Assembly: GCA_964304625.1 (NCBI GenBank) | Contig: OZ199839.1 | Location: 8,040,497 to 8,104,496, forward strand | Length of the DNA stretch: 64,000 bases | DNA from: Kudoa neothunni | Taxonomy: Eukaryota > Animalia > Cnidaria | Reading direction: 5' to 3' | Shown here: piece after piece, positions 1,644 to 51,820 of the stretch | Position numbering within the stretch: the first letter of the stretch is position 1 | Layout: each line of letters starts with the position of its first letter | Program-made: the position numbers and the translations under genes | Notes under the pieces: generated by a model | Told to the model about the DNA's origin: nothing | Database searches by the model: none | What the model saw: only the letters and a program-made list of their open reading frames with translations

Positions 1644-4511
1644 CTAGTTTTTATTTTTCCAGTATCCGAAATAGAATCCCACACCAACAACAACGATGAG
1701 CGCTGGAACTACAACAGCAATAATTCTAAAATAATTGATTAACAAAATATCTCCATCAATAATTACATAGTATTTTTCGACCTAAAATAAATAAATTATA
1801 ATTCAAAAATTTTATTTTACATGGATTTGTTTGATTCGTCATCTAATCAAAATATCAGAACTAATGAACACTAATATTTAATCAATTACCTTTCTGGATC
1901 TCGACAAAACCAGTGATATTGTTATCCGTGCCATGATACAACATTAAACGGTAATTGTTGGTGTTATCCACATTTGAAATTGTAAATTCCTTGCATGATG
2001 GAAAAACAGAACAACCTTGTTCACCAGTTGTCATGCATTTTTGGACGATTGGTTTGGATGGATCATCCCAATTTTTCAATTCCCATTTGCATAACGACTG
2101 TTCATCAACGCCTGTAGGAAGAGAAGTTTTAACTTTTATGTTTTCGCCTTCTCTTGTAAACACCACAGTTAATTTGATCGGATTATTGGTGGGGGTAGGC
2201 TGTGGGTCTAAATTAAAATTTAATTAAAATATGAACGATATGAATTTAGAATTAGATGTTTTATTACTTATGGGTACTTGGATGGTAGTTTCTGCAGATC
2301 TGCCAACAGCCGTAACTAAAACTTCATATTCCTTGTCTGCTTCGTATCCTTCCTTGAATATAATTTCAATGCATAATGGCGGTTGTGCACATGGAGTGAT
2401 TTCTTTTTTTTTATTTGAAGATGGCACATTCTGTGGTTGCTGTCCATTAGTCGCCCTAGATATCGCTATTTTAGAAGGGTTTAGATACTGCAGAGGGTGT
2501 CCCAATCTTTGTTGTTGATGACGGTGGTGGGCATTGGTAGATCAACTCGGATTCTTGCCCTTTTTTTACGTTTACTTTATAGTGACAAACAGCCGTAGGA
2601 TATGGTGTTGACAGTACACCTGTCACTTTGAAGCCTTTTTCTATAAATTCTGATTGTAATGTGAGCGTTGAAAAAGCTTGAAACATAATTAGTTATATAA
2701 TTCGAGGTCAATTATTTATATACTCGTTGTAATTTTATATTCTTTTTCTCCATAATCCTTATGTGCAACAACCTTTAGGTCATATTCAGTTCCAGGCATT
2801 AATCCTATAATTTTTTGAGACTCCTTACAAAAACCCCTGCAAGGATAGCTATCTTCGCACATGGCACACACATATACATCCTTTCGATGAGGGCTTATAT
2901 AATAAGCACAAGTCTTGTCAGTAGATGCAATTTGTTCATTCCCATTTATTGCTTTAACAGACGCGGTTGTATCCGTTACTGTTGGAGTTGTTTCAGAAAA
3001 GGTTGGACCAGATTTCTTTGCTATATATTTATTTTAAACAATATTTTTTTCGATTATATTACCTGTTCGAAAGAATATATGTTCTTTAAAATCATTAGAC
3101 ATACCATTCGAATTCGGGGCTGCAATTTTAAGAATATATGGTTTTCCACTATCCAATCCTGTAATCGTAAATGCAACATCACAGTTCGTGCCACAATCTT
3201 CTTGGTCAGTTCCACACTTTGCCGTTACAACAACTGCAGGTTTGGGTTTGTCTGCTTCATAAAAAGTTACAGTACAAGTATCAAATCTAGGTTCATTTTC
3301 TGGTTTAAACAAGGGAACATTTAGCGTAACACCAGTAAGTGAGTGTGTTGACAATAAGGTAGGATCGGCAGATTCTGTGATAACTATAAGAAGAATATAA
3401 ATAAATAAAGCTTCATGAAATACCAAATTTTTTCTGAACATATCCGTCAAACGTGACGTCATTGATGGTCAATGGTAGATGTCTAGTTTGAATCAATATT
3501 TCAACAATAGATTTGGAGTCTTCAAATACGAGCTCAACATTATTACAAGGTGCATAACATTTATTCGTCGATCCACACACTGATTTGTATTCATTGTTAC
3601 TTGCGGATGCTAACACTTCTCTTACACTGAAAAGACATATTTCAAACGGAAATTTGTTTGTAAACTTTAGCATATACTTTGTCTTCACATTCGAACTATA
3701 GGTCACGTAATATTGTGGCTTATAAACATCAAAATTGAATAGGGTGTATTTATTTTGCAGGTTGTAAAAGAAACTGGGATAATTATCGCATTTCATTTCA
3801 TAATATGGAATCATCAAATTAAACTCCATTTCGCTTTCATTATTATCAATGCAACTTTCCTTAACTGTTCCGTCTTGGTATTTTACATCCTTGTAAAATA
3901 TCGGACATTTCACCGGTGTACAAGTTTTTGTACTCAGTTTCAGCTTTTGGTTGTTTGTTGTTATTGTTACTTGGGGATTGACCAATAATGCTAATAAAAA
4001 TTTATGAACAATCTTAGGTGCTTTAATTACTCAATTCCAATCCAAATACAACCCCACGATTATTTTTTGCTGCAGCGGTTGCTGCTGTATTATCCGTAAA
4101 AACGGCAATATACTTTGTTTTCGGAGAAAACTTGTCAAAACCAAGCTTATTTCCACTACTTGAACATGCCCAAACACATTGGTCATTATTTGTTCCTTCA
4201 ACACGACCAGGGCATTCGTTAATTTCAACAAGATCAGTGTTTTCAGTATTAGATTTTTTGATATGGCAATTTTTCCCCGAAACATAATTATTTCCACCTA
4301 ATATCAAATTAACCTCTAATTGATTATTCTGTTTCAAAAGTTTGTATTTTAAAGTATTTTCAGTATCAGCTGAATTTGGAGCATCTCGTTGGGCCACTTC
4401 TGTACTCATGAGCGGAGTGGAGGCTATATATAATTAGTTATATTTTTTGTGATTTTTATATATACATGAGAGGAAAGTGAAAATTCCTAAAAGGTAGACA
4501 AAGTCTTTCAT
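1644..4511 (-). CDS. Family A copy A1: spliced type I membrane protein with 7 Cys-rich FN3-like modules (one apparent +1 frameshift near 2478)
   Basis: ATG at 4511 (MKDFVYLLGIFTFLS, signal peptide-like). Exons are collinear with A2 and bounded by GT..AG. Ends ...VVGVGFYFGYWKNKN TAG at 1644. An extra C in a CCC run near 2478 splits ORFs 2471-2686 and 2224-2505. Confidence 0.85.
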
Positions 4512-8252: not shown

Positions 8253-8589
8253 TTAATGAACTCAGGATGATTGCACTACCGAAAATTTATTCATCTTGAA
8301 ACTTTTAAAAACTTACGAAAAATTAAGATAAGTAAATATCAGACAACACGTAAAATATGAATAAAATATAACCAGTAGTTTTAGAGATATTCATTCCTTG
8401 AGATATAGACACTTCCAAAAATAAAACCTCCTCATCTAGATACAGTCGTTTAGTTTTATTCATAAATCGATCGAATAGGTTCAATCAAAATACTTTAAAT
8501 TAAATGAATTGAACAGACTCAATGACAAACTTTGATTAAATAAATTATCACTAATCGACTTTTTGAGTATTGTTTGTCAGAAAAATAGT

Positions 8590-8918
8590 TTTCATTCCAT
8601 CGGAAAACATACCGTATCTCTATTTTAACCAAATCTGATTAACGATTTCCGGAAAGAGTATTTTCTTTTGCTGGAACTATCCAAACCATCAGATGAAATA
8701 GAAATTGTACTCTACATTAGGTGCCCTTATTCGAATGAGGAAATTTTTCAACACATCGACAAAATTTTTGTTATAACTTTGAAGTTTTTGAGTCAATTAT
8801 AAATTTAAATAATGTATATATAATTAAATATTATTTCGATTGTTGAAAAAAATTCTGATTTGTCCGATTTTGCCCGGCAAAAATTTGGCCGCATGTCCAA
8901 TCTGGGTTGACAACGCTG
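8590..8918. mobile_element. hAT-like element end remnant (same family as 41670-42805 and the inverted end at ~54642)
   Basis: Similar to 42520-42805 (ggaaaacataccgtatctc...tgtccgattt). Terminates GGGTTGACAACGCTG, a CAG-type TIR. Left coordinate approximate. Confidence 0.6.
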
Positions 8919-8919
8919 T

Positions 8920-9674
8920 TAAATATGCCATATTAGCACCAATGTCATCAGTTAACTATTTAAATTCATCAAAAATCTGCGTATACAAAATTATTATTCC
9001 TATGGGATTAATGAAATATTCAGCTGTAAAATATTTCATTGGATTATCAAAAGACAATGATGTAGTGATACTAGCCAAAATTTTTCTTTCCTTATTTATG
9101 AATATGTTAATAGATTGTTTTTAAATAGATTTATCAGTAAAATTTCAAGTGAAGTAAAATGTTATCCTTCTTAAGAAAATAAACTTTTTTAATTCAACAT
9201 TTGAGTTATTTTGTACTCTAATGGATCCCATAATTTAGAGACGACAATGAATGGTTTTACGAGTCCAAAACCTGTTGAATTTTATTAAAAAGCTTACCAA
9301 AGATTACATAATTTAACAAAATTGTCAATGTCAAAGAAAACATGCATCCTCTTTTCTTTTTAATTGAAAGTAGGTGAATGGATATATATGGTGTGGAATA
9401 AAGTTTAGGTCGGATTTCCTTCTGATTATTAAGAATGTATCGAATTTTAATCGTATCTCTTTAAATTTATTTTAGGAGTTATAAATTACCATCCGCCAGA
9501 ATATTTTTTAAGATGAGCTAATATATCCGAGATTTTTGTATTGATGATCCATTGAGTTCAAGTCAAACATCAATTCTTTATGTATATATATATATATATA
9601 TGAATTATAATCCGATCAAATTTTTGAGTTTCATATTGAACGACAACTATCGTTTTTATCTTTTGCAAAATATA
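8920..9674 (+). promoter_or_regulatory. Conserved upstream region of family A genes (putative promoter/5'UTR)
   Basis: Recognisably homologous upstream of all five A copies (e.g. atatggtgtggaataaagtttaggtcggatttccttctgattatt), with a TA-rich tract about 75-95 nt before the ATG. Function is inferred from position only. Confidence 0.5.
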
Positions 9675-12591
9675 ATGAAAGCCTTTGTCTACCTTATGGG
9701 AATTTGTACTTTATTGTCATGTATATATCCAATTTCCAAAGAAATATTAATAACTTGTAGCCCCTTATTTGCTTATACACACTCAAGGAGGTCAGGGAGA
9801 TGCTCAAAATCCAGTTACTACTGAAAACTCTCTAACTTACAAACTTGTAAAAGTAGACAATGAATTGAAGGTTAATTTAATATTAAATGGAAATGACTAT
9901 CCCAGGGAGAAAAAGTGCCATATCAAAATATCAAATAATGAGGAAACAAACCTTTTTGATATTACTACATGTCCTGGTGGTGAGCAAGAAGTCAACAGTA
10001 ATCAATGTGTTTGGGCATGCTCAGGAGGTTCCGATAAACTGGGTTTTGATAAGTTTACTCACAACACTAAATATGTTGCCATCTTTACAGATAGCGCTGT
10101 AACCGCTGCTGCAAATAAAAATAATGGTGGAGCCGTATTTGGATTGGAATTTCGTAATTAAAGAACCTAATATTGTCAATAAATCTTTTTTAGAATTATT
10201 GGTCAATCCGAAAGTTGCAATTACGAAAAACAATCAAAAACTACAATTTAACACCAAAACTTATAAACCAGTGAAATGCCCCATATTTTACAAGGATGTG
10301 GAATTTAAAGAAGGAACACCTGAAAATACTTGCGATGAAAATTGTGAAAGGGAAGTGGAGTTTAATTTGATGATCCCACACTATGAAATGAAATGCGAGA
10401 ATTATCCTAGTTTCTTTTACATCCTTCAAAACAAATACACTTTATCAAACTTTGATGTTTATCAGCCACAATATTACGTGATCTATAGTTCGAGTGCTAC
10501 AACGAAATATATGCTAAAGTTTACAAACAAATTTCCATTTGAAATGTGTCTTTTCAGTATAAGAGATTCGTCAACAACAATTACAGAGACAACTACCGAT
10601 GACTATACATCAAAGTGTGGTTCGGACAACAAAAAATGTTTTGCACCTTGTAATAATGTTGAACTTGAATTCGCGACTTCCACTTCTGTAATTGAAGTAT
10701 TGATTCAAACCAGACACGTATCGTTGGTTAAAAGTGGCATCAAATACAATGGATATATTCAGAAAAAATTTGGTATTTAATGAATATTTACTCATTTATA
10801 ACCTTCTCATAGTTGTCACAGAAACTACTGCCACTCCATTATTGTCAACATACTCGCCTACTGGCGTTACATTAAATATTCAGTTGTTTAAGCCAGAAAG
10901 CAATCTCAAATTTTCTACTTGTACTGTAACTTATTTTGAAGCAGACAAACCTAAACCTGCTTCTTCTGAAGTTTCGAAATGTGAAGATGACAGCCCAACC
11001 TGTAGAACAGAGTGCACTAATGCAATAACGATTAAAGAGCTCGATAGTGGAAAACCATATATTCTCGAAATCGCAGCAGGCAATGGCGACGGTATTCTTA
11101 ACAATTTTAAAGAACATATATTCTTTCGAACAGGTAATATAATAGAAAACAAATATTTTTTAAAATAAATATATAGCAAAAAAACCTGAATCCACCTTTT
11201 TTGAGACAAGCCCAACAGTAAAGGACACTACTGCGTCAATTAAAGCAATAGATGTAATTGGTACAATTACACATGAAGACAAAACTTGTGCTTACTATAT
11301 AAGCCCTCATGGAAAGGATGTATATGTGTGTGCCATATGTGAAGATAGTTATCCTTGTAGGGGTTTTTGTAAGGATTCTCAAAAAATTATTGGGTTAATG
11401 CCCGGAACCGAATATGACCTAAAGATAGTTGCACATGAGGATTATGGAGAAAAAAAACATAAAATTACAACGAGTATATAAATAATTGACCTCGAATTAA
11501 ATAACTAATTATGTTTCAAGCATTTTCAACGCTCATACTACAATCGGAATTTATAGAAAAGGGCTTCAAAGTGACAGGTGTACTTTCAACACCACATCCT
11601 ACAGCTGTTTGTCAATATAAAGTAAAAGTAAAGAAAGGGCAAGAATCCAAATTGGTCTATCAGTGCCCACCACCAGCTTCTACAACAAACACTGGCCCAT
11701 CCTCCAATGCACCAAAAACTTCTAAAATAGCACTAGCTAGGACAACTAATGGACAACAACCACAGAACGTGCCGCCTTTAAATAAAAAAACCGGAATCAC
11801 CCCATGCACACAACCTCCATTGTGCACTGATATTATATTCAATGAAGGATACGAAGAAGACAAGGAATATATAGTTTTGGTTACGGCTGTCGGCAGATCT
11901 GCAGAAACTACCATCAAAATACCCATAAGTAATAAAACATCTAATTCATATCGTCTTACTTTGGTTGAGTTTTTAAAATTATTAAAAATATGTACATTAA
12001 TTCTTATTATACTAAATTTTAATTTAGATCCACAACCTACCCCCAGTAACAATCCAATCAAATTAACTGTGGTGTTTACAAGAGAAGGCGAAACCATAAA
12101 AGTTAAAACTTCTCTTCCTACAGGCGTTGATGAACAGTCGTTATGCAAATGGGAATTGAAAAATTGGGATGATTCATCCAAACCAATCGTCCAAAAATGC
12201 ATGGCAACTGGTGAACAAGGTTGTTCAGCTTTTCCATCATGCAAGGAATTTTCAATTTCAAATGTGGATAATACCAACAACTACCGTTTGATGTTATATC
12301 ATAGTACAGATAGCAATATCACTGGTTTTGTCGAGATCCAGAAAGGTACTTGAAAAAATGTTATTGGTCGCTATTTCTCATTTTTGATTAGATGATGAAT
12401 CAAATAAATCCATGTAAAATAAAATTTTTAAATTCTTATTTATTTATTTTAGGTCGAAAAATACAATGTACTTCTTGATAATGATATCTTGTTAATCAAT
12501 TATTTTAGAATTATTGCTGTAGTAGTTCCAGTGCTCATCATTGTCGTTGGTGTGGGGATTCTATTTCGGATACTGGAAAAATAAAAACTAG
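9675..12591 (+). CDS. Family A copy A2: ~825-aa spliced type I membrane protein with 7 Cys-rich FN3-like modules
   Basis: Exons: 9675-9720, 9761-10153, 10194-10772, 10813-11133, 11177-11473, 11521-11928, 12028-12345, 12392-12413, 12453-12467, 12509-end. All introns are GT..AG (40, 40, 40, 43, 47, 99, 46, 39, 41 nt) and the frame stays open. Signal-like MKAFVYLMGICTLLS; FN3-like GLMPGTEYDLKIVAH; TM IIIAVVVPVLIIVVGVG. An extra G near 12555 gives the tail ILFRILEK* (stop 12584) instead of FYFGYWKNKN* (12591). Confidence 0.9.
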
Positions 12592-14336: not shown

Positions 14337-14787
14337 GCCGAGGACAGATAGCACATCGGTGTGACACTCAGACTCAGAACCATGAGGAAATGGTTCGAAT
14401 CCGCCGGTGGTCGGACTACTGCTTCCGTTTCGGTGGGTCTCCATCCCATATTTGGGAGCTGTGGTTAAAGTGTAGGCTCACTGTGGAATGGGGTGTATTA
14501 ACAGCCAAATTCGCGTGAATAGGAGTTTGAATCTCCGGAACCCATTGAAAAGGCAAGTAATTTGCAGTCCCCACAGAGTCAATGTCCTTAAAGGGATAAG
14601 GTTTGGGTGGTGGTCGCCCTGAGACGAGGATGTTAAGTGGATTAAAGGTCCCACATTACTGCATAAAGATAAGGGGTGGGGTTTCATGTTATGTCCTGTG
14701 GTGCCTAAAGCGTTAATGGAAGAGGTCTGACCAACCAGAATTCCACAACCTAATAAGTTGCCCCAGGGGTTTTCTCTATCAAACAAA
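14337..14787 (+). mobile_element. tRNA-derived SINE, copy 1 (~450 bp)
   Basis: GC-rich island with a Pol III A-box-like TAGCACATCGG and B-box GGTTCGAATCC in the first 70 nt, then ~380 nt of body. An inverted second copy lies at 36204-36679. Confidence 0.8.
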
Positions 14788-17120: not shown

Positions 17121-20046
17121 ATGAAAGACTTTATCTACATTTTGGGAATTTGTATCTTTCTGCCGTGTATATATACACATAAAACAAACAACATTACTAA
17201 TAATATATAGCCTACTTATCGCTTATAGACGCGCAACCGGCCCAGGGAGATGCCTCAAGTCCAGTTTCTACTGAAAGCCCTTTAACTTATAAACTTGTAA
17301 AAGAGACAAGTGGATTGAAGATTAATTTATATTAAGTGGAGCCGATTATACTGGGGAGAAAAATTGTCATATTAAACAATCCAACAAACATGACACGAAT
17401 CTTGTTGAAATTGACGAATGCTCTGGTCGTGTTGCAGGTGTATCTAGTGGTAAATGTGTTTGGACATGCTCTGGAGATGATAATAAATTCGCTTTTGACA
17501 ACTTTTCTCCAAGGACTAAATATATTGCTGTTTTATACGGATAATGTTGCTACCATCGCTGAAGCGAAAAATAATAACGGGGCTGTATTTGGATTGGAAT
17601 TTCGTAACTAAAGCATGCTAATATTTTCCATCAATTTCTTTTAGCATTATTGGTCAATCCACAGGTTACAATAACGAAACAAGAACAGACAAAAACTGAA
17701 ATTTGCCACAAAAACTTGTACACCGGTGAACTGTCCGATATTTTTACAAGGACGTGGAATATGCAGTAGGGACAGCTCAGGTAAGTTGCGATGCAAATAA
17801 TGAAAGTGAAATGGAATTTAATTTGATGATTCCACATTATGAAATGAAATGCAAGAATTACCCCCAGTTTCTTTTATAAACTGCAAAATAAATACACACT
17901 ACAAACATTTGATGTTTATCAACCACAGTATTATGTTACCCTCTAGTTCGAGTGCTGCAACGAAGTATATGCTAAAGTTTACAAACAAATTTCCTTTTGA
18001 AATATGTCTTTTCAAAATAAAAGAGGTGCCAACAACTGGTAATAGCGACTACATGTCCAAATGTGGTTCAGCAGATACATGTCATGCACCTTGTAATAAC
18101 GTAGAACTTGAACTCACCACTTCAAAGCTTATTGTTGAAATATTGATTCAAACTAGGCACGTATCTTTGGTTAAAAAGGACGACACATATGAAGGATATA
18201 TTCAGAAAAAATTTGGTATTTAATGGATATTTGCTCATTTATAACCTATTCATAGTTGTCAAAGAAACTACTGACTCTACCTTATTGTCGGCACACACAC
18301 CTACCGGTGTTACATTAAATGTTCAGTTGTTTAAGCCAAATGATACACCTAATTTTGAGGGTTGTACTGTAACTTATTATGAAGCAGATAAACCTAAGCC
18401 TGATACTGCTGCTCAAACGCCAAAATGCGGAAACTCTGATACACCATGTAGAGCGGAATGCACTGCTGCTCTAGTGATTTTGGGGCTTGATGGTGGAAAA
18501 CCATATATTCTTGAAATTGCAGCAAGCAATTCCAATAGTCCTGTTAGCGGCTTAATAGAACATATATTCTTTCGAACAGGTAATATAATAATAAAAATCT
18601 TTTTTAAAATAGATATATAGAAACGAAACCTGGTTCTACCTATTCAACGACAAACCCGACAGTAAAGGATACTACTGCATCAATCAAAGCAATAGATGGA
18701 ACTGAAACAATTACACATGAAGACAAAACTTGTGCTTACTATATAAGCCCTCATGGAAAAGATGTATATGTGTGTGCCATGTGCGAAGATAGTTATCCTT
18801 GCAGGGGTTTTTGCAAGGAGTCACAAAAAATTATAGGATTAATGCCTGGAACCGAATATGACCTAAAGATAGTTGCACATGAGGATTATGGAGAAAAAAA
18901 AACATAAAATTACAACGAGTATATAAATAGTTGAATTCTAATTATATAACTAATTATGTTTCAAGCTTTGTCAACGCTCACACTACAATCAGAATTTATA
19001 GAAAAAGGCTTCAAAGTGACAAGTGTACTTTCAACACCACATCCTACAGCTGTTTGTCACTATAAAAATAAACGTAAAAAAAGGGAATGAATACGAGTTG
19101 GTCTACCAATGCCCACCATTGGCTTCTACAACAAAGATTGGGACACCCTCTGCAGCATCTAAACCTTCTAAAATAGCGATATCTAGGGCAACTAATGGAC
19201 ATCAACCACAAGGTCTGCCACCTTCAAATAAAAAAACCGGAATCACTCCATGCACACAACCACCATTGTGCACTGATATTATATTCAATGAAGGATACGA
19301 AGAAGACAAGGAATATATAGTTTTGGTTACGGCTGTCGGCAGATCTGCAGAAACTACCATCAAAATACCCATAAGTAATAAAACATCTAATTCTAAATTC
19401 ATATCTTTTATATTTTAATTAAATTTTTAAAATTATTAAAAATATGTACATTAATTCTAGTTATACTAAATTTTAATGTAGATCCACAACCTACCCTCAC
19501 TAATAATCCAATCAAATTAACTGTGGTGTTTACAAGAGAAGGCGAAAAACATAAATGTTAAAACTTCTCTTCCTACAGGCGTTGATGAACAGTCGTTATG
19601 TAAATGGGAATTGAAAAATTGGGATGATCCATCCAAACCAATCGTCCAAAAATGCATGACAACTGGTGAACAAGGTTGTTCTGTTTTTCCATCGTGCAAG
19701 GAATTTACAATTTCCAATGTGAATAATACCAACAATTACCGTTTGATGTTATACCATAGTACCAATAACAATATCTCTGGTTTTGTCGAGATCCAGAAAG
19801 GTAATGGATTAAATATTATTTGTCATTATTTCTGATATTTTTATTAGATGATGAATCAAACAAATCCATGTAACATCAAGTTGTTAAATTATAATTGATT
19901 TATTTTAGGTCGAAAAATACAATGTACTTATTGATGGAGATATTTTGTTAATCGACTATTTTAGAATTATTGCTGTAGTAGTTCCTGCGCTCATCATTGT
20001 TGTTGGTGTGGGATTCTATTTCGGATACTGGAAAAATAAAAACTAA
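17121..20046 (+). CDS. Family A copy A3 (several single-base frameshifts: pseudogene or sequencing errors)
   Basis: ATG 17121 (MKDFIYILGICIFLP). Same exon layout as A2; ends VVGVGFYFGYWKNKN TAA at 20046. Indels, mostly in homopolymer runs, break exons 2, 3, 5, 6 and 7. Confidence 0.8.
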
Positions 20047-29937: not shown

Positions 29938-32200
29938 ATGTTGGTCATTGCATTGTTAATCATTTCTCTCTGCTACAATGGTGAAATAAGCAAGAAGTGG
30001 GATTATCTATAATAGATATATTTAGCCCACTCACACAAATACTACGTCCAACGAGATCAAACCGAATTAGAGGATACAATCCATTTAAAACTTGAAGGAG
30101 TTTCTGGAAGTAAAATGCAACGTTCAATTGTTGGAAAGAAACGAATTTTTCTATCACTATATTGGGAGTGAATCTGAAGGAAAACAACTTAAGGATGTCT
30201 CTTGTGTCGGGAAATACACTATTCCAACTGGAGCTGCTTTTCCATTCTATTATGTACAGATAAGATCCGAATATGCAACTGAAACTCTTAAAATAATCCA
30301 TAGTAATTCAATTTTTAGAAATTTTCCCCTAATTTTCTTGTAGTCACTGACACTATCCCTCAAACTCAATTTAAAAGTAAACGAAACCTCAATCGAATTC
30401 ACCCACTAAAAATGTCTGCAGTCATCCTCAAACTTGTAAACTAACAAGTGGTGACAAAGTCCTGGATGAGTTCATTCCAACCTCTGAAACCGAGTGCGAC
30501 GCTGAAACCAGGCTCGCCGGATTCTTTGATTCAATAGGCGACTCAGTTGAACTCTCTTGTGGTGTCAATCAGCCAAAAATACACATGTATAGAAAAAATA
30601 ATATGGCCATGGAATTCAATCCATTAGACAAACTTACGTATCACATTGAAAAAGTCAATGGTGGAACTAGTAAAATAAAAATTGTTTTTGATGAGGACTT
30701 GAAGGATGAAGTGTGCAAATTTGAGATTAATAAAAAATCTACAGAAGGTTTTACATCAAATTGCTCGGTTTCAAATGATAACGAGAATTGTTATCAACTC
30801 TGCGCTGATGTTGCAATGGACTTAACATTTGCTGACACAGACAAAGATTTTAAAGTTAAAGTATCGACTAGAAATCATGCAGGAATAGAGAAAATTCTAA
30901 GAAGTAAAATTCTTGTTTAAATAATTTTATTTAAATGTCAATTAGTTGACAAAGGTAACCTAGAAGTAACTCCAAAAGAAACCAATGCAACTCTTTCTAT
31001 CCGTGCTCTTATAGATGATTTGGGAACTGCAACTTGTGCAATTGAGTTGAAAAAGCAAGAATTCCCTAAATTTAACATTGGCGCGAAATGCAATGCCGAT
31101 TCGACGACGCCATGCCCAACAAGTTGCGAAGATGCTACCATCCTTGATCTTGAGCCAAATACAAAATATATCGTTAAAGTGACTTACACTAAAACCAGTG
31201 AGACTTCTAAAACATATATTGCAGAGAAGCTATTTAAAACTAGTAATAAATAAAAAGTAATTGATCTAAAATTTAATTAAGCTGACTACAATATAACGCA
31301 ATTGCCTGAGATTAAAGCATATTACGAGCACGTAAAAATGACTGTAGCACCGAACGTGGCTCTGTTTGACAGAGTATACTGTAAAATTCAACAAAAAATG
31401 GTGGGCGAAACTGCTTTCAGCCCATCTGAATGCGAAGAATCGGTTGATTGTTCAGGTTTATGTGGACAGCCACTCACTATTAAAAACCTTTTTCACGATA
31501 CTGAATACGAATTTAAATATTTATTTGGAAAGTACGTTAGTGACCTTGATAAAAACAAGGTGACAGTATCGACAAGTAATGTACAATATAAATCTCCCAA
31601 TGACATTTATTAAGTTGCAACGCTTCAAAAAATCAATGTTACCCACACGTGGAATAACACCGATCTGATAGTCACAACGACAATGGAACAGATGGATCCA
31701 GACCAAATTTGTGATTATACATTTGCCCAAATAGTAGATGGAGTTGTCAAATATACTTACGGATTATATGATAAAACTACTGGATGGGAGGGGAAATGCA
31801 ACCAAGAAATAACCTTTTACAACGCTGCCTTCCTACAGAAGGGGATCAATGAAAGTACAGGCCAGATACGTTAGTGAGCCGATCGTTGTGAGCCTTTGGG
31901 CTGGAGGAAATGAGGATAATTTTGATCCAAACTTTCCAGAAACTGGTAAACAAGGTAAATAATATTATATAACCATTATTTATAATCCATTTTAGGCACT
32001 TCGAATAGGTAGGATAGTTTTATGTTAGAGTATTCAATTAACTATTAACTTTAATTTAGCGCTAATGTTGGTGGAACCAAAATTCTGTAATATTATCTGT
32101 TCCCATACAGTTCTAATGATGATTTAGGTTGATTGTTGGCGGCGTTTTAATAGCACTGATGGTTTTCGCTATTGTTTTCTTGGTTTTGACAAAGAAATAA
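29938..32200 (+). CDS. Family B copy B1: spliced type I membrane protein with 6 Cys-rich FN3-like modules (about four homopolymer indels)
   Basis: ATG 29938 (MLVIALLIISLCYN). GT..AG introns at 29981-30025, 30303-30343, 30904-30945, 31243-31281, 31576-31614, 31955-31995, 32009-32059, 32087-32127. FN3-like ILDLEPNTKYIVKV and IKNLFHDTEYEFKY; TM LIVGGVLIALMVFAIVFLVL followed by TKK*. Confidence 0.85.
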
Positions 32201-36203: not shown

Positions 36204-36679
36204 ATTTTTTTTGTTTACAAGGTAAAACCCTTGACGCAACTTGTTAGGTTGAGGAATTCTGGTTGATCAGACCTCTTCCATTAACGCTTTAGGCACCGCA
36301 GGACGTAACATGAAACCCCGTCGCTTATCTTTATGCGGTAGTGTGGGACTTTAACCCACAAAACATCCTCGTCTCAGGGCGACCACCACCCCAAACCCTA
36401 TCCCTTTAAGGACGTTGGCTCTGCGGGAACTGCAAATCATTTTGCCTTTCGATGGGTTCCGGAGATTTAAACTCCTATTCACGCTCACCCCCACTTCACG
36501 CAAATCTGGCTGCCAGTGCATCCCACCCCACAGCGAGCGTACACGTTAATCACAGCTCCCAAATATGGGATAGAGACCCACCGACACGGAAGCAGTAGTC
36601 TGACCACCGGCGGATTCGAATGCATTACCTCAAGGTTCTGAGTCCGAGTGTCACACCAATGTGCTATCTGTCCACGGGC
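36204..36679 (-). mobile_element. tRNA-derived SINE, copy 2
   Basis: Reverse complement aligns end to end with 14337-14787 and ends in an A-rich tail (GTAAACAAAAAAA). Confidence 0.8.
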
Positions 36680-37824: not shown

Positions 37825-40681
37825 ATGAAAGACTCTGTTTACGTTTTAAGAATTTGTACTTATCTGACGTGTATATACACACAAACGGTCCTGGGAGGTG
37901 CTTCAAATCCAACTACTACTGAAACCCCTTTAATTTATAAACTTGTGGAAGAGAGCAATCAATTAAACGTTAATTTTATATTAAATGGAAATTATTATAC
38001 TGGGGACAAGAAATGTCATATAAAAAAAGCTGATGATGATGGCACGAAACCTTGTTGAAATTGCTACATGCCCCGGTGATGCTTATACAACAGATGGTGA
38101 AAAATGTGTTTGGACATGTTCAGGAAGTACCAATAAGCTAGCTTTTGACAAGTTCTCCCCAAAGACTAAATATATCGCTATCTTTAGCGATAATGACGCA
38201 GCGACCGCGGCTTCGAAAAATAATAATGGGATTGTATTTGGATTGGAATTTTGTAACTAAAGGATCTGTGTTCAGTAAATTTCCTTTAGCATTACTGGTG
38301 AATCCGCGAGTTTCAATAACAAGGGAGGGGAAAAAACTGAAATTGAGCACAAAAGCTTGTAACTCGGTGAAATGTCCCATATTTTACAAGGGCGTGATAT
38401 ATGATGAGGGAACAACTCAGAGAAGTGGCATTGCAAATATTGAAAGTGAAATGGAGTTTAATTTGATGATTCCACATTATGCAATGAAATGCGATAATTA
38501 TCCCAGTTTCTTTTACACCCTGCAAAATAAATACACTCTTTTTAACATAGATGTTTATCAACCACAATATTACGTGACCTCTAGTTCGAGTGCTCCAACG
38601 AAGTATATGCTAAAATTTACAAACAAATTTCCCTTCGAAACGTGTCTTTTCAGTATAAGAGAAGTGCCAACAGCAGGTAGTAACGGTGGATACACATCGA
38701 AATGTGGTTCAGCAGATAAATGTTATGCGCCATGTAATAATGTTGAACTTGAATTCACAGCATCCAAGTCTGTTGTTGAAATATCGATTAAAACCAGACA
38801 CGTACCACTGACCATCAATAACATCCCTTATATTGGGTATATTCAAAAAAAATATGGTAATCCAAAAACATTTTAACTATGATAATCTTCTTATAGTTGT
38901 CATCGAAACTACTGCTCCTACCTTATTGTCAGAGCATTCATCTACTGGTGTTAAGTTAAATGTTCCCTTGTTTCAATCACAAGCTGCTGTTAAATTTTCT
39001 GGATGTACTGTAACTTATTATGAAGCAGACAAACCAAAACCTGCTGACCTTGTTCCTGATGGGGCGAAATGTGGAACTGGTAAAACAGACTGTGGCAACG
39101 AGTGCACGACTGCTCTAGAAATTACAGGATTGGATAGTGGAAAACCATATATTCTTGAAATTGCAGCTGGTAATAACGCTAGCCCTCTTCAAGATTTTAA
39201 AGAACGTGTATTCTTTCGAACAGGTACTATAATCGAAAAAAATATTCTTTTAAATAAATATATAGCAAAGAAATCTGATCCAACCTTTTCTGAAACAACT
39301 CCAACAGTAACGGATACAACCGCGTCTGTTAAAGCAATAGATGTAACTGGTACAATCACAAAAGACGACAAAACTTGTGCTTACTATATAAGCCCTCATA
39401 GAAAAGATGTATATGTGTGTGCAATGTGCGAAGATAGTTATCCTTGCAGGGGTTTTTGCAAGGATTCTCAAAAAATTATTGGGTTAATGCCTGGAACCGA
39501 ATATGACCTAAAGGTAGTTGCACATGAGGATTATGGAGAAAAAGAACATAAAATCACAACGAGTATATAAATTGATGAATTCTAATTATATAACTAATTA
39601 TGTTTCAAGCTTTGTCAACGCTCACACTAAAATCGGAATTTATAGACAAAGGCTTTAAGGTGATAGGTGTACTTTCAACACCATATCCTACGGCTGTTTG
39701 TCACTATAAAGTAAACGTAAAAAAAGGGAGTGAATCCGAGTTGGTCTACCAATGCCCACCATTGGCTTCTACAGCAAACACTGGAGCAACCTCTAAAGTA
39801 TCCAAGACTACTAAAATAGCACTAGCTAGGACAACTAATGGACACCAACCACAGAACGTGCCGCCTCCAAATAAAAAACCAGAAATCACTCCATGCACAC
39901 AACCTCCATTGTGCACTGATATTATATTCAAAGAAGGATACGAAGCAGACAAGGAATATGTAGTTTTGGTTACTGCTGTCGGCAGATCTGCAGAAACTAC
40001 CATCAAAATACCCATAAGTAATAAAAAATCTAATTCTAAATTCATATCGTTTATATTTTAATTACATTTTTAAAATTATATACATTAATTTTTTATTATA
40101 CTAAACTTTAATTTAGGCCCACAGTCCATCCCCACTAATATCCAATCAAATTAACTGTGGTGTTTACAAGAGAAGGCGAAAACCATAAAAGTTAAAAACT
40201 TCTCTTCCTACAGAGCGTTGATGAGCAGTCGTTATGCAAATGGGAATTGAAAAATTGGGATGATCCATCCAAACCAATCGTCCAAAAATGCATGGCAACT
40301 GGTGAACAAGGTTGTTCAGCTTTTCCATCATGCAAGGAATTTTCAATTTCAAATGTGGATAACACCAACAATTATCGTTTGATGTTATATCATAGTACAG
40401 ATAGCAACATCTCTGGTTTTGTCGAATCCAGAAAGGTACTTGAAAAAATGTTACTGGTCATTATTTCTGATAATTTGATTAGATGATGAATCAAACAAAT
40501 CCATGTAACATCAAGTTGTTAAATTATAATTGATTTATTTTAGGTCAAAAAAATACAATGTACTTATTGATGGAGATATCTTGTTAATCAATTATTTTAG
40601 AATTATTGCTGTAGTAGTTCCAGTGCTCATCATTGTTGTTGGTGTGGATTCTATTTCGGATACTGGAAAAATAAAAACTAG
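37825..40681 (+). CDS. Family A copy A4 (intron 1 lost by deletion; several single-base frameshifts)
   Basis: ATG 37825 (MKDSVYVLRICTYLTCIYTQ...). ORFs 38145-38876, 38833-39570 and 39600-40061 match A2 exons. TM exon at ~40601-40681. Indels at ~38048, 40140-40215, ~40427 and ~40647. Confidence 0.8.
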
Positions 40682-41655: not shown

Positions 41656-43852
41656 GGCTAAATTCCAGTCAGTGTCGCCAACCGTGTCCGATTTCGGACA
41701 AATTAGTCAAAATTGTCCAATTTTTTCCATGTCGTATTTTATCCGATTTTTAGTCTTGTTCTTCGAAAGTCTGAATAATCGCAAAACAAAGTTTCAAAGA
41801 TTGGAGTTTTTGCAAATTCCCAAAAAATGGAATCTAATCGTTACTGATTTCATGACGAGAAATCTTCGAGTAGAAAATTTTATACTTGGAACAATGCTTT
41901 ATTTCGAATTAAAATGCCTGCAATAGATGTTCACCAAACACAAGACACAGTTAAGAATTTTAATAAGTCTTAAAGCCCATGTAATACAAAATTGAGCTTA
42001 GAAAAACATGCCAAAAATTTATCAAAATGAACACATTTTTAAATTTTATGCTCCCGTTAAGACCAATATTTTGGATTTTTTACCATTATCATTATTGACG
42101 GCAATACACCGTTTTATCATGACCATGAACCATTTTGGAATTATTACGAAGAGATTTTTGTGCTTGAATTTAAAAGACTCATGATGGTGATATCTAATTG
42201 TAAGTTATCATTACAAGTGTTTGTTATCAATTTTCAAAAAATTCCAATTTTAGGTATTACCTAAAAAAATGAAAATTTAACTAAATTTTAACTACTTGAC
42301 TAATTTTTCTTAATTTTAATGAATGAATGGTCGCACATAAAAACGAAACCTCATCTGGGTATAGTTGTTACATGAAATTTAAAAGTTGGACGATAGACTG
42401 TAATAGAATTGTTTGAAATTAGAGGAATTTAATAGGTTAAAACAAGGTTTGTTAGACTAAATTATTAATAATCGCCTTTTTAGCCATTGTTTATCGGCAA
42501 ATAAATTTTAATTCTATCGGAAAATACCACACATCTTTATTTCCCCATGCTCTGATCAACGCTTCTCCGGAAGCAGCACTTTCTCTTTTGGAATTATCGA
42601 ACACATCAGAAGAAATAGAATGTTGTGCTCTACATTAGATAATCTTGTTCTAATGAGGAATTTTTTCAACACATTGACAAAATGATGCCATAAATTTGAG
42701 GTTTCTGAGTTAATTATAAATTAACGTAATATTTATACATATAATTAAATATTAGTTTCGTTTTTACAAAAAATCTGATTTGTCCGATTTGCGTTGGCGG
42801 CACTGATTTCAGTGACTGCGACACGCTTCGGAGATATTAGTAACTGGTCGTTATATTTGTGGCGCGGCTAATCTTAACAAGAAAATATATACTTTCGTGA
42901 ACAGTAACGATATCACTAATTTGGATTATGGTTATTTCCACGATGATTTAGATTATACAATAAAGACATTACAAAGTCTTGGATTGATACCAAGTTTTTC
43001 TAAATGTTTGTGTGGCGGTCAAAATTTTTTTGCTAAAAGAAAAGATACTGATGATTGATATCAGTATAAATACATTTTATGCAGAAAAAGATAGATTCAA
43101 AAGGGAACAATTTTTGAAATATCTAGACTTCTGTTGCGGAAGATCTTCATATTTATCGTTTCTATAATTCAGCACTCATCCATGACTTATGAGGATATTC
43201 GAAAATATGTTAGAATATCATCAAATTCCACCATATGTGAATGGAAAAATGTAATATATGATTTTGTGACCTTTAAATTGGATGAGGAATCTCCAAAAAT
43301 TGGCGGACGGGGAGTTATCTTTCAAATTGATGAGACTGTCATATCTAAAAGAAAATACAACATGGAAAGGATTCTTCGTAATCAACAATATTGGATGGTT
43401 GGTGGTATCGACGAGAATGGAAATTGTTTTTTACGCTTAACACAACCAAGAAATAAAGACATACCTGTAAGAATTATCCTTGACAACGTCGAAGAAGAGT
43501 CGATCATTTGGACGGACGGTTGGAAAGGATATAATAGCTTGACAATGTTGGGTTCTGTGCATGGGTAATTATTCACGGATGGAAGTTCGTTTCCTCCGAG
43601 GGAACACATTCTAATCCAATTAAACCTACTTGGGGAGCTTTTAAGCGTAAATATCGGAGCGCAACAAATAAAAACCCAGAGACTCTTCCTCACTATGTGG
43701 CCGACTTTAAGTATCGAAGAAAATATTCCGGCAAAGAATTATCATCATTATTTAAATATATAATGATTAACAATAATATATTTTAATTTTTACGATGTTT
43801 CTGAAGTTTGTCTATTTTACCCGAAACGAGCCACAGTCATTGTAATTTAGCC
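41656..43852 (+). mobile_element. Merlin (ISXO2/IS1595-related) transposon, interrupted by a hAT insertion in its left TIR
   Basis: Perfect 8-bp TSD AAAATCTG on both sides. TIR GGCTAAATT[..]CAGTGACTGCGACACGCTTCGG / CCGAAACGAGCCACAGTCATTGTAATTTAGCC. ORF 43134-43568 contains KIGGRGVIFQIDETVISKRKYN...WMVGGID...IWTDGWKGY. Confidence 0.9.
41670..42805. mobile_element. Non-autonomous hAT element nested in Merlin
   Basis: TIRs CAGTGTCGCCAAC / GTTGGCGGCACTG; 8-bp TSD ATTCCAGT / ATTTCAGT. Confidence 0.8.
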
Positions 43853-47100: not shown

Positions 47101-50100
47101 TTACTCTAATAAGGTAGTTAGTCATTTTTAATTATAATGAAGGACTAAAATTAAAAATCACATTAAACTTGATTTTTTAAAAATTTGCAACCCCATGATC
47201 CTTTGAAATCTTGGATCAATTTTAACAAATGAAAAAATATGGAATTTTGTAACCGAATATTTTAAACGAATCCAAATAATTCCATTTCATTAAAAATTTC
47301 CGAAACTAATGAATATTTGTTTATTTACAAAATAAGAATGTGTACCTTCAACGGAAATTTTCTTTACATAAAACTTAAATTAGTTACAATTAAATAAGAA
47401 TAAAATGTTCCATATTTTCCATAGCAAATGTAGAAAACTTTGAGCTAAATTTTTTCAATGCCAATTTATTTGGAGAAACATAGATTAGGTGAGAAAAGTG
47501 TATTTTCATAATAAACTTTATTGATATTAAAGTAGGAAATATTTTATAAGATATTTTATCAGTTAAAATCATATTGTGGAGAAAGTCACTCAAATCATTT
47601 TTTTTATATTTCGTTTGTATGCAAACTAGGAGATTAATTTTGAAGAGTAAAATAAGTTAATAATGTATATATGATAATGCGTTGAATGATTCATGTAGGT
47701 TATATAAAGTATGTGATATAATTATTTAATTTCCTTTTGAATGAATAAACAAAATGTTAATTATTAATGAGGTTTTTAAAGTTATCCCCGAATCTAAAAA
47801 TGTTTGGAACTAGGGAACTTATCTAGAAACTTAAAAATCAATTGAGAGTGTTCATATTGATAAATAACCTACTTAGTAATTGATGACACACATGTACTGC
47901 ATAAAATATATATTCGATACAATATTTGAATTTTCAATAGTAATAAAAAGATTTTATATCTGCTCATAAACTGTTGGTTCCATTGCATCAATTATTGCGC
48001 CTTTGTAAACTTATTATCGTCTAATTTAAAAAAGATAAATATTTTGAAATTTCTAAAATTAATTTGGAGATTAAATATATATAATTTTAACTGGTATAAT
48101 GATTTTCAACTTCTTGTCAAATAAAACAACCTAAACAAATAAGATTTATTATTAGATGTAAATATAATTATTCGAATATTGAAAAAATAATATTAATTTT
48201 CTCACATAAAATAAAGAAATACAATTAAAAAAAATATGCGTGAAACTAAATAATTATGTTCCTAATAGTAATGAATGAAGAAATCTAATAGATAGCTAAA
48301 ATTTGTTATTTTATGAATACAATCACCAAATCGAACGGAAATTCGTGAGAGTATTCTTCTAAAATAAAAATCTAGTTTTTATTTTTCCAGTATCCGAAAT
48401 AGAATCCAACGCCAACAACAATGATGAGCGCAGGAACTACTACAGCAATAATTCTAAAATAATTGATTAACAAAATATCTCCATTAAGAAGTACATTGTA
48501 TTTTTCGACCTAAAATAAATTAATAAATAAGAATTCAAAATTTTTATTTTACATGGATTTATTTGATTCATCATCTAATCAAAAATGAGAAATAGCGACC
48601 AACAACATTTTTTTCAACTACCTTTCTGGATTTCGACAAAACCAGTGATATTGTTATCCGTACTATGATACAACATTTAAACGGTAATTGTTGGTGTTAT
48701 CCACATTTGAATTGTAAATTCCTTGCATGATGGAAAAACAGAGCAAACCTTGTTCACCAGTTGTCATGCATTCTTGGACGATTGGTTTGGATGGATCATC
48801 CCAATTTTTCAATTCCCATTTGCATAACGACTGTTCATCAACGCCTGTAGGAAGAGAAGTTTTAACTTTTATGTTTTCGCCTTCTCTTGCAAACACCACA
48901 GTTAATTTGATTGGATTATTAGTGGCGGTAGGTTGTGGATCTAAATTAAAATTTAGTATAATAAGAATTAATTTACATATTTTAATGATTTAAAAATTTA
49001 ATTAATTTAGAATTAGATTTTTTATTACTTATGGATATATTGATGGTAGTTTCTGCAGATCTGCCGACAGCAGTAACCAAAACTACATATTCCTTGTCTG
49101 CTTCGTATCCTTCTTTGAATATAATATCAGTGCACAATGGAGGTTGTGTGCATGGAGTTATTTCGGTTTTTTTATTTGAAGATGGCAGACCTTGAGGTTG
49201 TTGTCTATTAGTTGATCTAGATAATCGCTATTTTAGAAGTTTTTGGTGCATTGGAGGATGGGCCAGTGTTAGTTGTTGATGACGGTGGTGGGCATTGATA
49301 GACCCAATTCGGATTCTTGTCCTTTCTTTACTTTTACTTTATATTGACAAACAGCTGTAGGATATGGTGTTGAAAGTACACCTGCCACCTTGAGCCTTTT
49401 TCTATAAATTCTGATTGTAGTGTGAGCGTTGACAAAGCTTGAAACATAATTAGTTATATAATTCGAGATCAATTTATTTATATACTTGTTATAATTCGGT
49501 GTATCTTATCCCCATATTCCTCATGAGCAATTACCTTTAGGTCATATTCAGTTCTAGGCATTAACCCAATAATTTTTTGAGAATCCTTACAAAAAACCCC
49601 TGCAAGGATAACTATCTTCGCATACGGCACACACATATACATCCTTTCCATGAGGGCTTATATAGTAAGCACAGGTCTTGTCTTGTGCGTTAAGTGGTCC
49701 AGTATCTGTTATTGCCTTAATTGATGCATTCGTATCCTTCACAATTGGTTTTGTTTCCGAAAAGGTAGAAGTGCCCTTTTTCTCTATTTATTCATCAAGA
49801 AATTTTTTTTCTATTGTGTTACCTGTACGAAAGAATATGTGTTCTTTAAAAACCTTGAAGAGGACTAGCGTCATTGTCTGCGGCAATTTCAAGAATATAT
49901 GGTTTCCCATTATCAAGCCCTGTAATCTCCAGAGAAGCAGTACACACGTTGTCACAGTTTGTTTTACCAGTTCCACATTTGCCCTCCAGGAGTAGTAGAT
50001 CTAGGTTTGTCTGCCTCAAAATAAGTTACAGTACAAGTAGAAAATTTAGGCTCATTTGTTGGTTGAAACAACTGAACATTTAATCTAACACCAGTAGGTG

Positions 50101-51820
50101 AGTATGTTGACAATAATGGAGTGGCAATAGTTTCTGTGACAACTATGAGAAGGTTATATTTGAATAAATATCCATTAAATACCAAATTTTTTCTGAATAT
50201 ATCCTTCATACGTGTCTTCACTTTTGGCCAAAGATACATGTCTAGTTTGAATCAATACTTCAACAACGGACTTGGAATCGTCGAAAATGAGCTCAACATT
50301 ATTACAAGGTGCATGACATTTACTTGCTGAACCACACTTTGACTTGTATTCAACACTGTTATCGGCTGTTGACTTATCTCTTATACTGAAAAGACACATT
50401 TCGAAGGAAATTTGTTTGTAAACTTTAACATATACTTCGTTGTATCACTCGAAATAGAGGTCACGTAATATTGTGGTTGATAAATATCAATGTTTTAATA
50501 GAGTATATTTATTTTGCAGTTTGTAAAAGAAGCTAGGATAATTGTCGCATTTCATTTCATAGTGTGGAATCAATCAAATTAAAATCCATTTCACTTACAA
50601 TATTTTCTGTGCAAGCATTTTTAGCTTCTCCTTCCGCATATTTCACGCCCTTGTAAAATATGGGGCATTTCACCGGATTACATGTTTTTGTACTAAATTT
50701 CAGTTTTTTCACATTTTTCTCGATTGTAACCTGTGGGTTAAACCAATAATGCTAAATGAAATTTACTAAAAATATTCGATGCTTTAATTACGCCATTCTA
50801 ATCCAAACATCCAGCCCCCATCTTTATTTTTATTTGCAGCAGTCGCTGCTGAACTATCCGTAAAGACGGCAACATACTTTGTCCTCGGAGGAAACTTGTC
50901 AAAACCAAGATTATGTTCATTTCCTGAGCATGCCCAAACACATTTGCTATTATTTGCATCGTCAACGCGACCAGAGCAATCGTTAATTTCAACAAGATCC
51001 GTGTCTACATCATTAGATTTTTTGATGTGGCAACTTTTCTCCGTAGAATAGTCGCTCCCAGTTAAAATTAAACTTAACTTTAATTGATTGCCCTCTTCCA
51101 CAAGTTTGTAAATTAAAGGGGTTGCAGTAGAGACTGGGTTTGGAGCACCTCCTGGACAGTTTGCGTGTATATAAGTGAAAAGTAGGCTATACGTTATTAG
51201 TAGCATTCTGTTGTAGTATGTGTATTTACGCAACAGAAAATTACAAATTCCTAAAAGGTAGATAAAGTCTTTCATTATATTTTGGAAAAGAAATAAACGA
51301 TAGTTTTCGTTCAATATAAAAATCAAAAATTTGATAGATTATAATTAATATATATACACAGAATGAATGTCGCCTTAAAACCCAATGAAACATCGATATA
51401 AATATTCGGAAATATTAATCCATCTTAATAAATATTCTGAGGGATAGTAATTTATAACCCCTAAAATTAAATTAAAGAATACGATTAAAATTCGACACAT
51501 TCTAACCAATATGAAGGAAGTTTAGACTAAATATTATTTCACATCGTAATGCTGATTTAAATATTTATAATAAAAAAGACAAGGGGATATAGGGCTTCCT
51601 TGACATTGATAATTTTATAAAATCTTGTGATATTAGGTAAGATTTTAAATATAATTAGATTGTTTTCGTATAAATAAAAATATTTGTTATCATTTCTAGA
51701 ATATAGATTCCATTAAATTATAGATTAACTCAAATGTTAAATGCAACGAAATTTATTTTCTCAAGCAAGAAATAATTTTACTTCTCTTCAAACGTTACTG
51801 ATAAACCAATCAAAAACTAT
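46742..51820. repeat. Direct segmental duplication of ~1-5070 (3' flank, family A gene and upstream region)
   Basis: 46742 onward reproduces the first bases of the window almost exactly and stays collinear through A5/A1 and their upstream regions. Confidence 0.85.
48372..51275 (-). CDS. Family A copy A5 (multiple single-base frameshifts: pseudogene or sequencing errors)
   Basis: ATG 51275 (MKDFIYLLGICNFLL). Same exon layout; ends VVGVGFYFGYWKNKN TAG at 48372. Indels in exons 3-7. Confidence 0.8.

Follow-up and report, generated by a model that had tools for sequence, protein, structure and literature searches.

A predicted cysteine-stapled FN3-like module with probable diversifying selection on its loops in a membrane protein family of Kudoa neothunni

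Monobodies are engineered fibronectin type III (FN3) domains in which diversified BC, DE and FG loops at one pole make the binding site. Conotoxins combine fixed cysteines with fast-diverging residues between them, and conserved flanks and introns lie beside the hypervariable coding block. The class I cytokine-receptor homology module is of FN3 type, carries four conserved cysteines, two conserved disulfides and a WSXWS motif, and belongs to an extracellular type I receptor. Here, we analyzed gene A2 (9675 to 12591, plus strand) and its paralogues in a 64,000-nucleotide stretch of Kudoa neothunni DNA (contig OZ199839.1 of assembly GCA_964304625.1, positions 8,040,497 to 8,104,496), which is called the window throughout. 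Exon 4 of A2 (E4; 10813–11133) encodes one 106-residue, four-cysteine FN3-like module with a segment that differs strongly from copy to copy. We consider it probable that this stapled module belongs to a family of type I membrane proteins and that residues in three of its loops are under diversifying selection among the paralogues.

Myxozoans are fish parasites of economic weight, and those of the genus Kudoa spoil fish, tuna among them, and can lead to food poisoning. To our knowledge, the way in which myxozoans handle host defences is poorly understood. The K. neothunni assembly comprises 40.2 Mb in three chromosomes and a circular mitochondrion; it was obtained at about 7x HiFi coverage from yellowfin tuna and has 5,316 predicted genes, with 45.6% of the genome annotated as repeats (PMC12239612). 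According to the genome paper, parasite transcripts yielded very few reads, and its available text makes no mention of gene families or surface proteins (PMC12239612).

The nearest precedent in the literature, as described in the available part of its paper, is EG95 of the taeniid Echinococcus, which has a signal peptide, one FN3 domain and a glycosylphosphatidylinositol (GPI) anchor and belongs to a seven-gene family with two positively selected sites (PMC2671473). In the myxozoan Sphaerospora molnari, families resembling variant surface proteins (VSPs) and RIFIN/STEVOR proteins, not FN3 proteins, have been described, and these are the only variant-surface families of myxozoans in the literature searched (10.64898/2026.02.11.705288). 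The same source characterizes Giardia-type VSPs by many CXXC/CXC motifs, a transmembrane helix and a conserved C-terminal pentapeptide (10.64898/2026.02.11.705288). Our literature search on myxozoan FN3 families and Kudoa surface families found nothing relevant.

Fixed cysteines, variable loops and predicted fold of the exon 4 module

A previous reading of the window, made from the sequence alone, had proposed hypervariable loops like complementarity-determining regions (CDRs), stapled by invariant cysteines, at 10948–11035. This interval corresponds to codons 45 to 74 of E4, whose codons occupy 10815–11132. The five loops quoted in the sequence-only reading were all found as written, in A1 (3181–3216, minus strand), A2 (10980–11015, plus strand), A3 (18426–18461, plus strand), A4 (39070–39105, plus strand) and A5 (49942–49977, minus strand), and a motif scan of the window detected an in-frame C-x5-8-C-x3-C at each of these places. 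In A5, an 8-nt deletion shifts the frame just upstream.

We aligned exon 4 from 30 genomic paralogues and calculated the entropy of each position in bits. C36, C56, C63 and C67 were invariant in all 30 sequences, and the anchors Y-Y/F-E-A-D-K-P and G-K-P-Y-I-L-E-I-A-A, which had been described as conserved from the five window copies, were at least 90% conserved. The entropy was 2.1–3.1 bits at positions 50–53, 57–62, 64, 66 and 69, compared with less than 0.3 bits in the framework. The pattern K-C-x6-C-x3-C had been taken as fixed; this is correct for the cysteines, but K55 was kept in 26 of the 30 paralogues, and the spacing, x6 in most copies, was x5 in two and x7 in four. Some length variation had also been noted, and it amounted to 1–3 residues upstream of K55.

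The hypervariable C'-E segment covers codons 47–69 (10953–11021, plus strand, as are the following positions) and is stapled by C56 (10980–10982), C63 (11001–11003) and C67 (11013–11015). The fourth invariant cysteine, C36 (10920–10922), is located at the start of strand C and presumably pairs with one of the three in the loop. A second variable segment, with an entropy of 1.5–3.0 bits, is the BC loop (codons 26–35; 10890–10919), and the third is the FG loop (codons 89–97; 11079–11105).

The boundaries of the variable block were visible at the nucleotide level. When the five window units were aligned by MAFFT, 10938–11052 was 63–69% identical, compared with 87% in the bin that contains the following intron. 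In short-read contigs of other paralogues, both flanks matched yet 10961–11046 was skipped, indicating that the variable block is sharply bounded. The alternation of fixed and variable positions is real and general and is no chance feature of the five copies. It had also been proposed for exons 2 and 3. In exon 2, the x8 stretch of C-P/S-G-x8-C-V-W-x-C was indeed variable. Exon 3 also contains a variable part, but this part precedes the Cys loop, and the loop itself (KCGSxxKCxAPC) is fairly conserved.

The inner modules differ from those encoded by E2 to E4. E5 reads CAYYISPxGKDVYVCAMCEDSYPCRGFC in at least 20 copies, and both E5 and E7 are nearly invariant, including their Cys loops.

An AlphaFold model was built on the 30-paralogue alignment and compared with known structures by Foldseek against the PDB and by shape and feature searches of the ESM Atlas. 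The model had a mean predicted local distance difference test (pLDDT) score of 76.7, with lower values in the loop, and contained strands at positions 10–14, 17–20, 35–42, 71–73, 81–89 and 98–105, which is an FN3-type pattern. The top PDB matches were all FN3 domains or monobodies (TM-score 0.56–0.62, probability 1.00, best E = 1.7e-3), and the Foldseek search against the PDB gave no match below E = 1e-3. ESM Atlas matches were also FN3 domains or monobodies (TM-score 0.59–0.67), and the Atlas feature search agreed.

Sequence profiles pointed to the same fold. Pfam fn3 (PF00041) scored 15 bits (E = 0.029), below its cutoff of 25, and Pfam searches with five exon translations returned only sub-threshold matches to fn3 and FN3_DSCAM and chance matches. 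The 30-paralogue profile reached FN3 domains of titin (E = 1.9e-7) and numerous proteins with FN3 repeats via the E-F hairpin, and its positions 52–95 aligned to the C'-E-F region of the titin domains. The FN3 hallmark core residues (EF-loop Leu, F-strand Tyr corner and B-strand Trp) gave a mixed picture: L76 was invariant, Y82 was present in 29 of 30 paralogues, and the Trp was replaced by L24/F25. Going by the predicted model, exon 4 encodes a novel form of the FN3 domain with a putative disulfide staple.

The assignment of the module to FN3 elements is as follows. Strand B (positions 17–25) leads into the variable BC loop (26–35), and strand C (35–42) is followed by the conserved CC' turn with the sequence EADKP (42–46). 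C' and the hypervariable stapled C'-E loop (47–69) precede strand E (70–75), the conserved EF turn L..GKPY (76–82) and strand F (81–89). The variable FG loop (89–97) and strand G (98–105) complete the module. In the FN3 topology, the BC, DE and FG loops lie at the N-terminal pole, and the AB, CC' and EF turns lie at the opposite pole. Therefore, the three variable segments would cluster on one pole, with the conserved turns opposite, as judged from this topology and a medium-confidence model. In exon 4, the C'/D/DE region of FN3 would give way to a small loop that three invariant cysteines hold together, and the fourth cysteine lies where strand C begins. The topology of FN3 would then place the stapled loop, BC and FG at the N-terminal, membrane-distal pole, which is equivalent to the monobody binding face.

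Diversifying selection on loop residues

We fitted codon site models to exon 4 using our own GY94/F3x4 likelihood program on an IQ-TREE codon tree, with a fixed topology, one scale factor for the branch lengths and naive empirical Bayes (NEB) posteriors. With 22 paralogues and 105 codons, M2a was preferred to M1a (twice the log-likelihood difference, 2ΔlnL, 45.3; p = 1.5e-10) and M8 to M7 (2ΔlnL 50.9; p = 9e-12). The M7/M8 comparison had been suggested together with the claim of diversifying selection, and its result favours that claim. M1a was also rejected in a gap-free subset of 14 sequences (2ΔlnL 15.6; p = 4e-4). In the full set, M2a assigned 13.5% of sites a ratio of nonsynonymous to synonymous substitution rates (dN/dS, ω) of 2.6, and M8 assigned 22% of sites an ω of 1.9.

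The posterior exceeded 0.95 at sites 23, 53, 58, 59, 61, 62, 66 and 91, and M8 added sites 28, 51, 52, 89 and 96; the gap-free subset picked largely the same sites. The M8 posterior was 0.84–0.99 for BC sites 28–30 and 34 and 0.95–1.0 for FG sites 89, 91 and 96. All selected sites were in the BC, C'-E or FG segments; the AB, CC' and EF turns and the strand cores contained none. Thus, the expectation that variable residues are clustered rather than scattered was supported along the chain, and their placement at one pole follows from the fold topology.

E5 served as a negative control. Through the same pipeline and for the same genes, its M1a/M2a comparison gave 2ΔlnL 0 (p = 1.0; M0 ω 0.23), and a systematic bias towards false positives is therefore less likely. 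For E2, M2a was preferred with 11 paralogues (2ΔlnL 16.8; p = 2e-4), with ω 3.1 for 13% of sites, some of which are inside the C-P-G-x8-C loop.

Pairwise estimates were calculated by the Nei-Gojobori method (NG86) and pooled over pairs with dS < 0.5. The resulting ω was 0.1–0.4 in the framework, 1.0–1.2 in the loop (cysteines excluded), 1.2–1.45 in BC and 1.5–2.7 in FG. The dN of the loop (0.61) was higher than the framework dS (0.48), and in 179 of 190 pairs it was above the divergence measured in the two introns beside the exon (0.33), a distance that is probably underestimated in these short and AT-rich introns.

Several results weigh against diversifying selection on the loops. The likelihood program is our own implementation with a fixed topology and a single scale factor, and its posteriors are NEB, not Bayes empirical Bayes. 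Neither the BC/N-terminal segment (codons 1–46; M1a/M2a 2ΔlnL 1.19, p = 0.55) nor the FG/C-terminal segment (codons 79–106; 2ΔlnL 4.4, p = 0.11) was significant when analyzed alone on its own tree, so formal support comes from the whole exon and the C'-E loop. Model confidence was lowest in the loop itself (pLDDT 58–70). Four of the five window copies are frameshifted, mostly by single bases in homopolymer runs, and no RNA reads were found on the window in the part sampled, about one fifth of one RNA run. The loop-wide mean ω was only about 0.8–1.2, a level at which relaxed constraint could account for much of the variability. The nearest neighbours of a paralogue differed among the BC, DE and FG segments, as for the paralogue L011, which was closest to L020 N-terminally and to L003 for DE/FG. 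This suggests that the paralogues are mosaic in relationship, and gene conversion can inflate likelihood-ratio tests (LRTs) of this kind. Finally, dS in the loop (10953–11021) was 0.65, compared with 0.48 in the framework and 0.33 in the flanking introns, and the contrast between loop and framework may come partly from a homogenised framework and homogenised introns.

The first alternative is that relaxed constraint alone explains the pattern. The loops would be tolerant spacers, the cysteines would be kept for folding, and the residues between them would drift neutrally. The low loop-wide mean fits this explanation, as do the 30% of sites that M2a places at ω = 1, the tolerated length variation and the decay of many copies. 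A loop dN/dS at or below 1 had been named in the sequence-only reading as the result that would count against selection; the mean comes close to it, and only a subset of the loop sites lies above 1, while the remainder looks relaxed. However, when ω was capped at 1, the model was rejected (M8a/M8; 22 paralogues, 2ΔlnL 32.9, p = 1e-8; gap-free set, 2ΔlnL 15.8, p = 7e-5), and approximately 14–22% of sites had ω of 1.9–2.6. The excess of loop dN over framework dS and intron divergence also speaks against purely neutral drift. The equivalent loop of E5 is nearly invariant; therefore, such loops are not intrinsically unconstrained. We regard relaxed constraint as the sole cause as improbable.

Gene conversion could produce a similar picture if introns and framework were homogenised and old, divergent loop cassettes were shuffled, with ω above 1 arising from mixed histories. 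The mosaic neighbours are in line with this, and so are the 3' halves of the window genes, which are 90–99% identical, introns included. The high dS of the loops also agrees, and it indicates either that the loops are older than their homogenised surroundings or that mutation is locally elevated. Against this explanation, the loop alone (codons 47–78) on its own tree rejected M1a (2ΔlnL 11.75; p = 0.0028), with ω 2.1 for 21% of sites and an M0 ω of 0.80. The pairwise homoplasy index (PHI) test found no recombination signal within the exon (p = 0.46), with little power at such divergence. E5 is exposed to the same conversion regime and gave an LRT of 0. Moreover, loop diversity held against homogenisation would itself need selection. 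A pure conversion artefact is thus unlikely in our judgement.

We read these data as purifying selection on the scaffold and diversifying selection on a subset of the loop residues, with the remaining loop residues relaxed. Purifying selection on the cysteines and the beta-sandwich core would keep the scaffold folded, and positive selection on the three-loop residues would give each gene copy a different face. We infer the disulfide pairing, the surface location, and a role of the variable face as a ligand-binding or antibody-exposed surface between host and parasite.

Structure of gene A2 and extent of the family

The window is AT-rich and eukaryotic in character (25–37% GC), and its introns are short with GT..AG borders. 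The gene model of A2 was derived from motif anchors, GT..AG borders and exon-by-exon translation of the five aligned copies. A2 consists of 10 exons and is the only window copy that is open throughout. E1 (9675–9720) encodes a hydrophobic signal peptide, as read from the sequence. E2 (9761–10153) encodes the outermost module, with C...C-P-G-x8-C-V-W-x-C, and is followed by E3 (10194–10772) and E4. The neighbouring module of E5 (11177–11473) contains an almost invariant Cys loop, C-x13-C-x2-C-x6-C-x3-C. E6 (11521–11928) and the membrane-proximal module E7 (12028–12345) precede the micro-exons E8 (12392–12413, 22 nt) and E9 (12453–12467, 15 nt), and E10 (12509–12591) encodes a transmembrane helix (IIAVVVP.LI.VVGVG...) and a tail of fewer than 10 residues. 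All exons are on the plus strand.

The modules of E2 to E7 share one plan, namely, a Cys at the start of strand C followed by Cys-x5-10-Cys-x3-5-Cys and then strand E, and the module exons, most of which encode a single module, have phase 1 at both ends. A2 is thus predicted to encode a type I membrane protein with a signal peptide, approximately seven four-cysteine FN3-like modules, a transmembrane helix and a very short tail.

One extra G in E10 of A2 leads to an alternative short tail. This G was retained in the X2/X3 contigs covering 12554, and the sole contig without it carries the variants of another paralogue. The DNA contigs used for this check come from one sample, possibly the source of the assembly itself. 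The micro-exons E8 and E9 (DESNKS / SKNT), located between the last module and the transmembrane exon, were protein-identical in all five copies except for one extra base in E9 of A4. Intron 3 (10773–10812, before E4) was exactly 40 nt long in 18 of the 20 paralogues measured (loci L001–L020) and 39 and 41 nt long in the other two. Its sequence diverges by 10–40% despite the fixed length, and the length itself seems to be constrained.

BLAST self-comparison of the window identified five units of approximately 4 kb that are 78–81% identical, with A1 and A5 on the minus strand and A2, A3 and A4 on the plus strand. A1 (gene 4511..1644; exon 4 at 3063–3383) contains one frameshift, in E6. A3 (gene 17121..20046; exon 4 at 18256–18579) contains several. 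In A4 (gene 37825..40681; exon 4 at 38897–39223), E2 is damaged at its 5' end and E7, E9 and E10 are frameshifted. A5 (gene 51275..48372; exon 4 at 49823–50142) has many frameshifts, including one inside the loop. A3 and A5 are probably pseudogenes. The frameshifts in A1 and A3 to A5 reflect either a pool of pseudogenes or errors of the 7x HiFi assembly. The family is arranged in arrays, both tandem and inverted, with decayed copies among the members.

Two more distant copies, designated family B (30762–31463 and 59654–60934, both on the plus strand), are interleaved with the family-A copies. They keep the four-cysteine module plan, for example as C-x6-8-C-x3-C followed by L.P.T.Y. Dispersed repeats of 74–89% identity flank the gene units (8525–9110 versus 42442–42790 and 54456–54737; 14338–14495 versus 36519–36677) and may mark the borders of duplicated cassettes.

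In the whole genome, exon 4 gave at least 150 scored matches (378 candidates), of which 146 of 150 were without an internal stop, and E7 gave at least 150 scored matches (313 candidates), often in tight arrays. Matches to both modules were spread over all three large contigs. With at least 150 matches per module compared with 5,316 predicted genes, the family would account for an appreciable fraction of all genes. The ten E7 copies nearest to A2 were 88–96% identical to it, compared with 56–72% for the nearest E4 copies, which fits a gradient from variable outer to conserved inner modules. The family is large and, to judge from the literature, apparently undescribed.

We also considered whether these sequences could be dead repeats, or artefacts of assembly at low coverage, in which the pattern is a relic. 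The coverage of about 7x and the large share of annotated repeats would suit such an origin (PMC12239612), and so would the frameshifts in four of five window copies and the absence of RNA support in the fraction of the run sampled. Opposed to this are the framework ω of 0.1–0.25 and the invariant cysteines in at least 30 copies, which show long-term purifying selection, and the nearly complete lack of internal stops among the scored exon 4 matches. The GT..AG borders, intron phase and micro-exons are conserved, and A2 is open over ten exons. In addition, the differences between paralogues are substitutions and not the homopolymer indels typical of HiFi errors. This explanation is therefore very improbable, and we consider a working gene family far more likely.

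Relatives outside the genome were searched for with the 30-paralogue profile (hmmsearch against 1.84 billion representatives), which yielded 570 matches, 150 of which were listed. Nearly all of the 150 matches listed were generic FN3-repeat proteins that matched by the E-F hairpin only and were without the cysteine motif. Beyond the Kudoa genome, the four-cysteine module was confined, among the matches listed, to five short fragments that come from metagenome or Logan contigs. Two of the fragments lie on metagenome contigs with introns and carry E3-E4-E5 and E4-E5-E6-E7 in the exon order of A2; a third, with 27.7% GC, is a more distant relative. The A2-like exon order with introns was found on L033 and L034 (ENA assembly ERZ28624939), and modules were found on L032 (Logan SRR33849685). 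L033 and L034 probably come from a related Kudoa-like organism, and all three contigs probably represent DNA of Kudoa-like or other myxozoans that has gone unrecognised in public assemblies. In these public assemblies, genes on the three contigs were called as if prokaryotic.

Comparison with known systems

As in variant-surface families, the paralogues form a large family in arrays with decayed copies. The site models together with the E5 control place selection on the exposed parts of the module, with exposure taken from the fold topology only. A tentative extension, which we hold to be possible and no better than that, is an FN3-based surface repertoire in Kudoa that follows the logic of CDRs and monobodies. 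At least 150 copies would each present a different disulfide-stapled face of three loops on the outer modules, new combinations would arise by segmental gene conversion from a pool with pseudogenes in it, and the repertoire would serve antigenic variation or the recognition of host or self ligands. If true, it would have no precedent among variant-surface systems built on an FN3 scaffold, and no known myxozoan gene family would be larger.

With this family it becomes possible to test whether variant surface repertoires serve a metazoan parasite as they do protozoan parasites. Its members are candidates for molecules of the parasite-host interface, for diagnostics and for vaccine antigens, and the repeat annotation, which covers 45.6% of the genome (PMC12239612), may conceal part of the family.

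Conotoxins and Giardia-type VSPs resemble the Kudoa family in the cysteine framework, diverging residues, conserved flanks and introns, and large families. This is an analogy of evolutionary mode only, because conotoxins and VSPs have a knottin or a CXXC-repeat fold and the Kudoa module is predicted to be a beta-sandwich of FN3 type. As a candidate, a Giardia-type VSP was rejected: the Kudoa pattern is C...C-x5-10-C-x3-5-C per FN3 unit without CXXC runs, and the tail (...GYWKNKN) is without a VSP-type C-terminal motif. The class I cytokine-receptor module was rejected as well. No WSXWS was present in any exon translation, and there was no Pfam match to such families. The cysteines of the receptor module are located elsewhere, whereas those of Kudoa are at the start of strand C and, three of them, in C'-E.

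EG95/EM95 is closer in kind, being a parasite surface antigen with a signal peptide, FN3, a membrane anchor, a multigene family and positively selected sites (PMC2671473). It differs from the Kudoa family in having one FN3 domain compared with approximately seven, a GPI anchor compared with a transmembrane helix, and seven genes compared with at least 150 matches per module (PMC2671473). EG95 is from a cestode and Kudoa is a cnidarian, the two were compared by literature description and not by sequence, and the four-cysteine staple was not seen in the available text of the EG95 paper (PMC2671473).

The closest structural likeness is to FN3 itself and to 10Fn3 monobodies or adnectins (PDB 1fna, 1ttf and 7jw7_B), with a common fold at the Foldseek probability and TM-scores given above. 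The E-F hairpin motif of FN3 (L..G..Y.....A.N) can be recognised by sequence in the exon 4 module, although the module remains under the Pfam fn3 cutoff. Ordinary FN3 domains are without the four invariant cysteines and the enlarged stapled C'-E segment, both of which are present in Kudoa, and the large bacterial and animal FN3 matches were without the Kudoa-type cysteine motif. Monobodies carry engineered diversity in BC, DE and FG, whereas the corresponding three segments of Kudoa vary naturally among paralogues. The FN3 scaffold would thus be used in nature as it is by protein engineers, and its putative disulfide staple might interest binder design. For loops arranged in this way, "CDR-like" is a fair analogy, with no homology implied.

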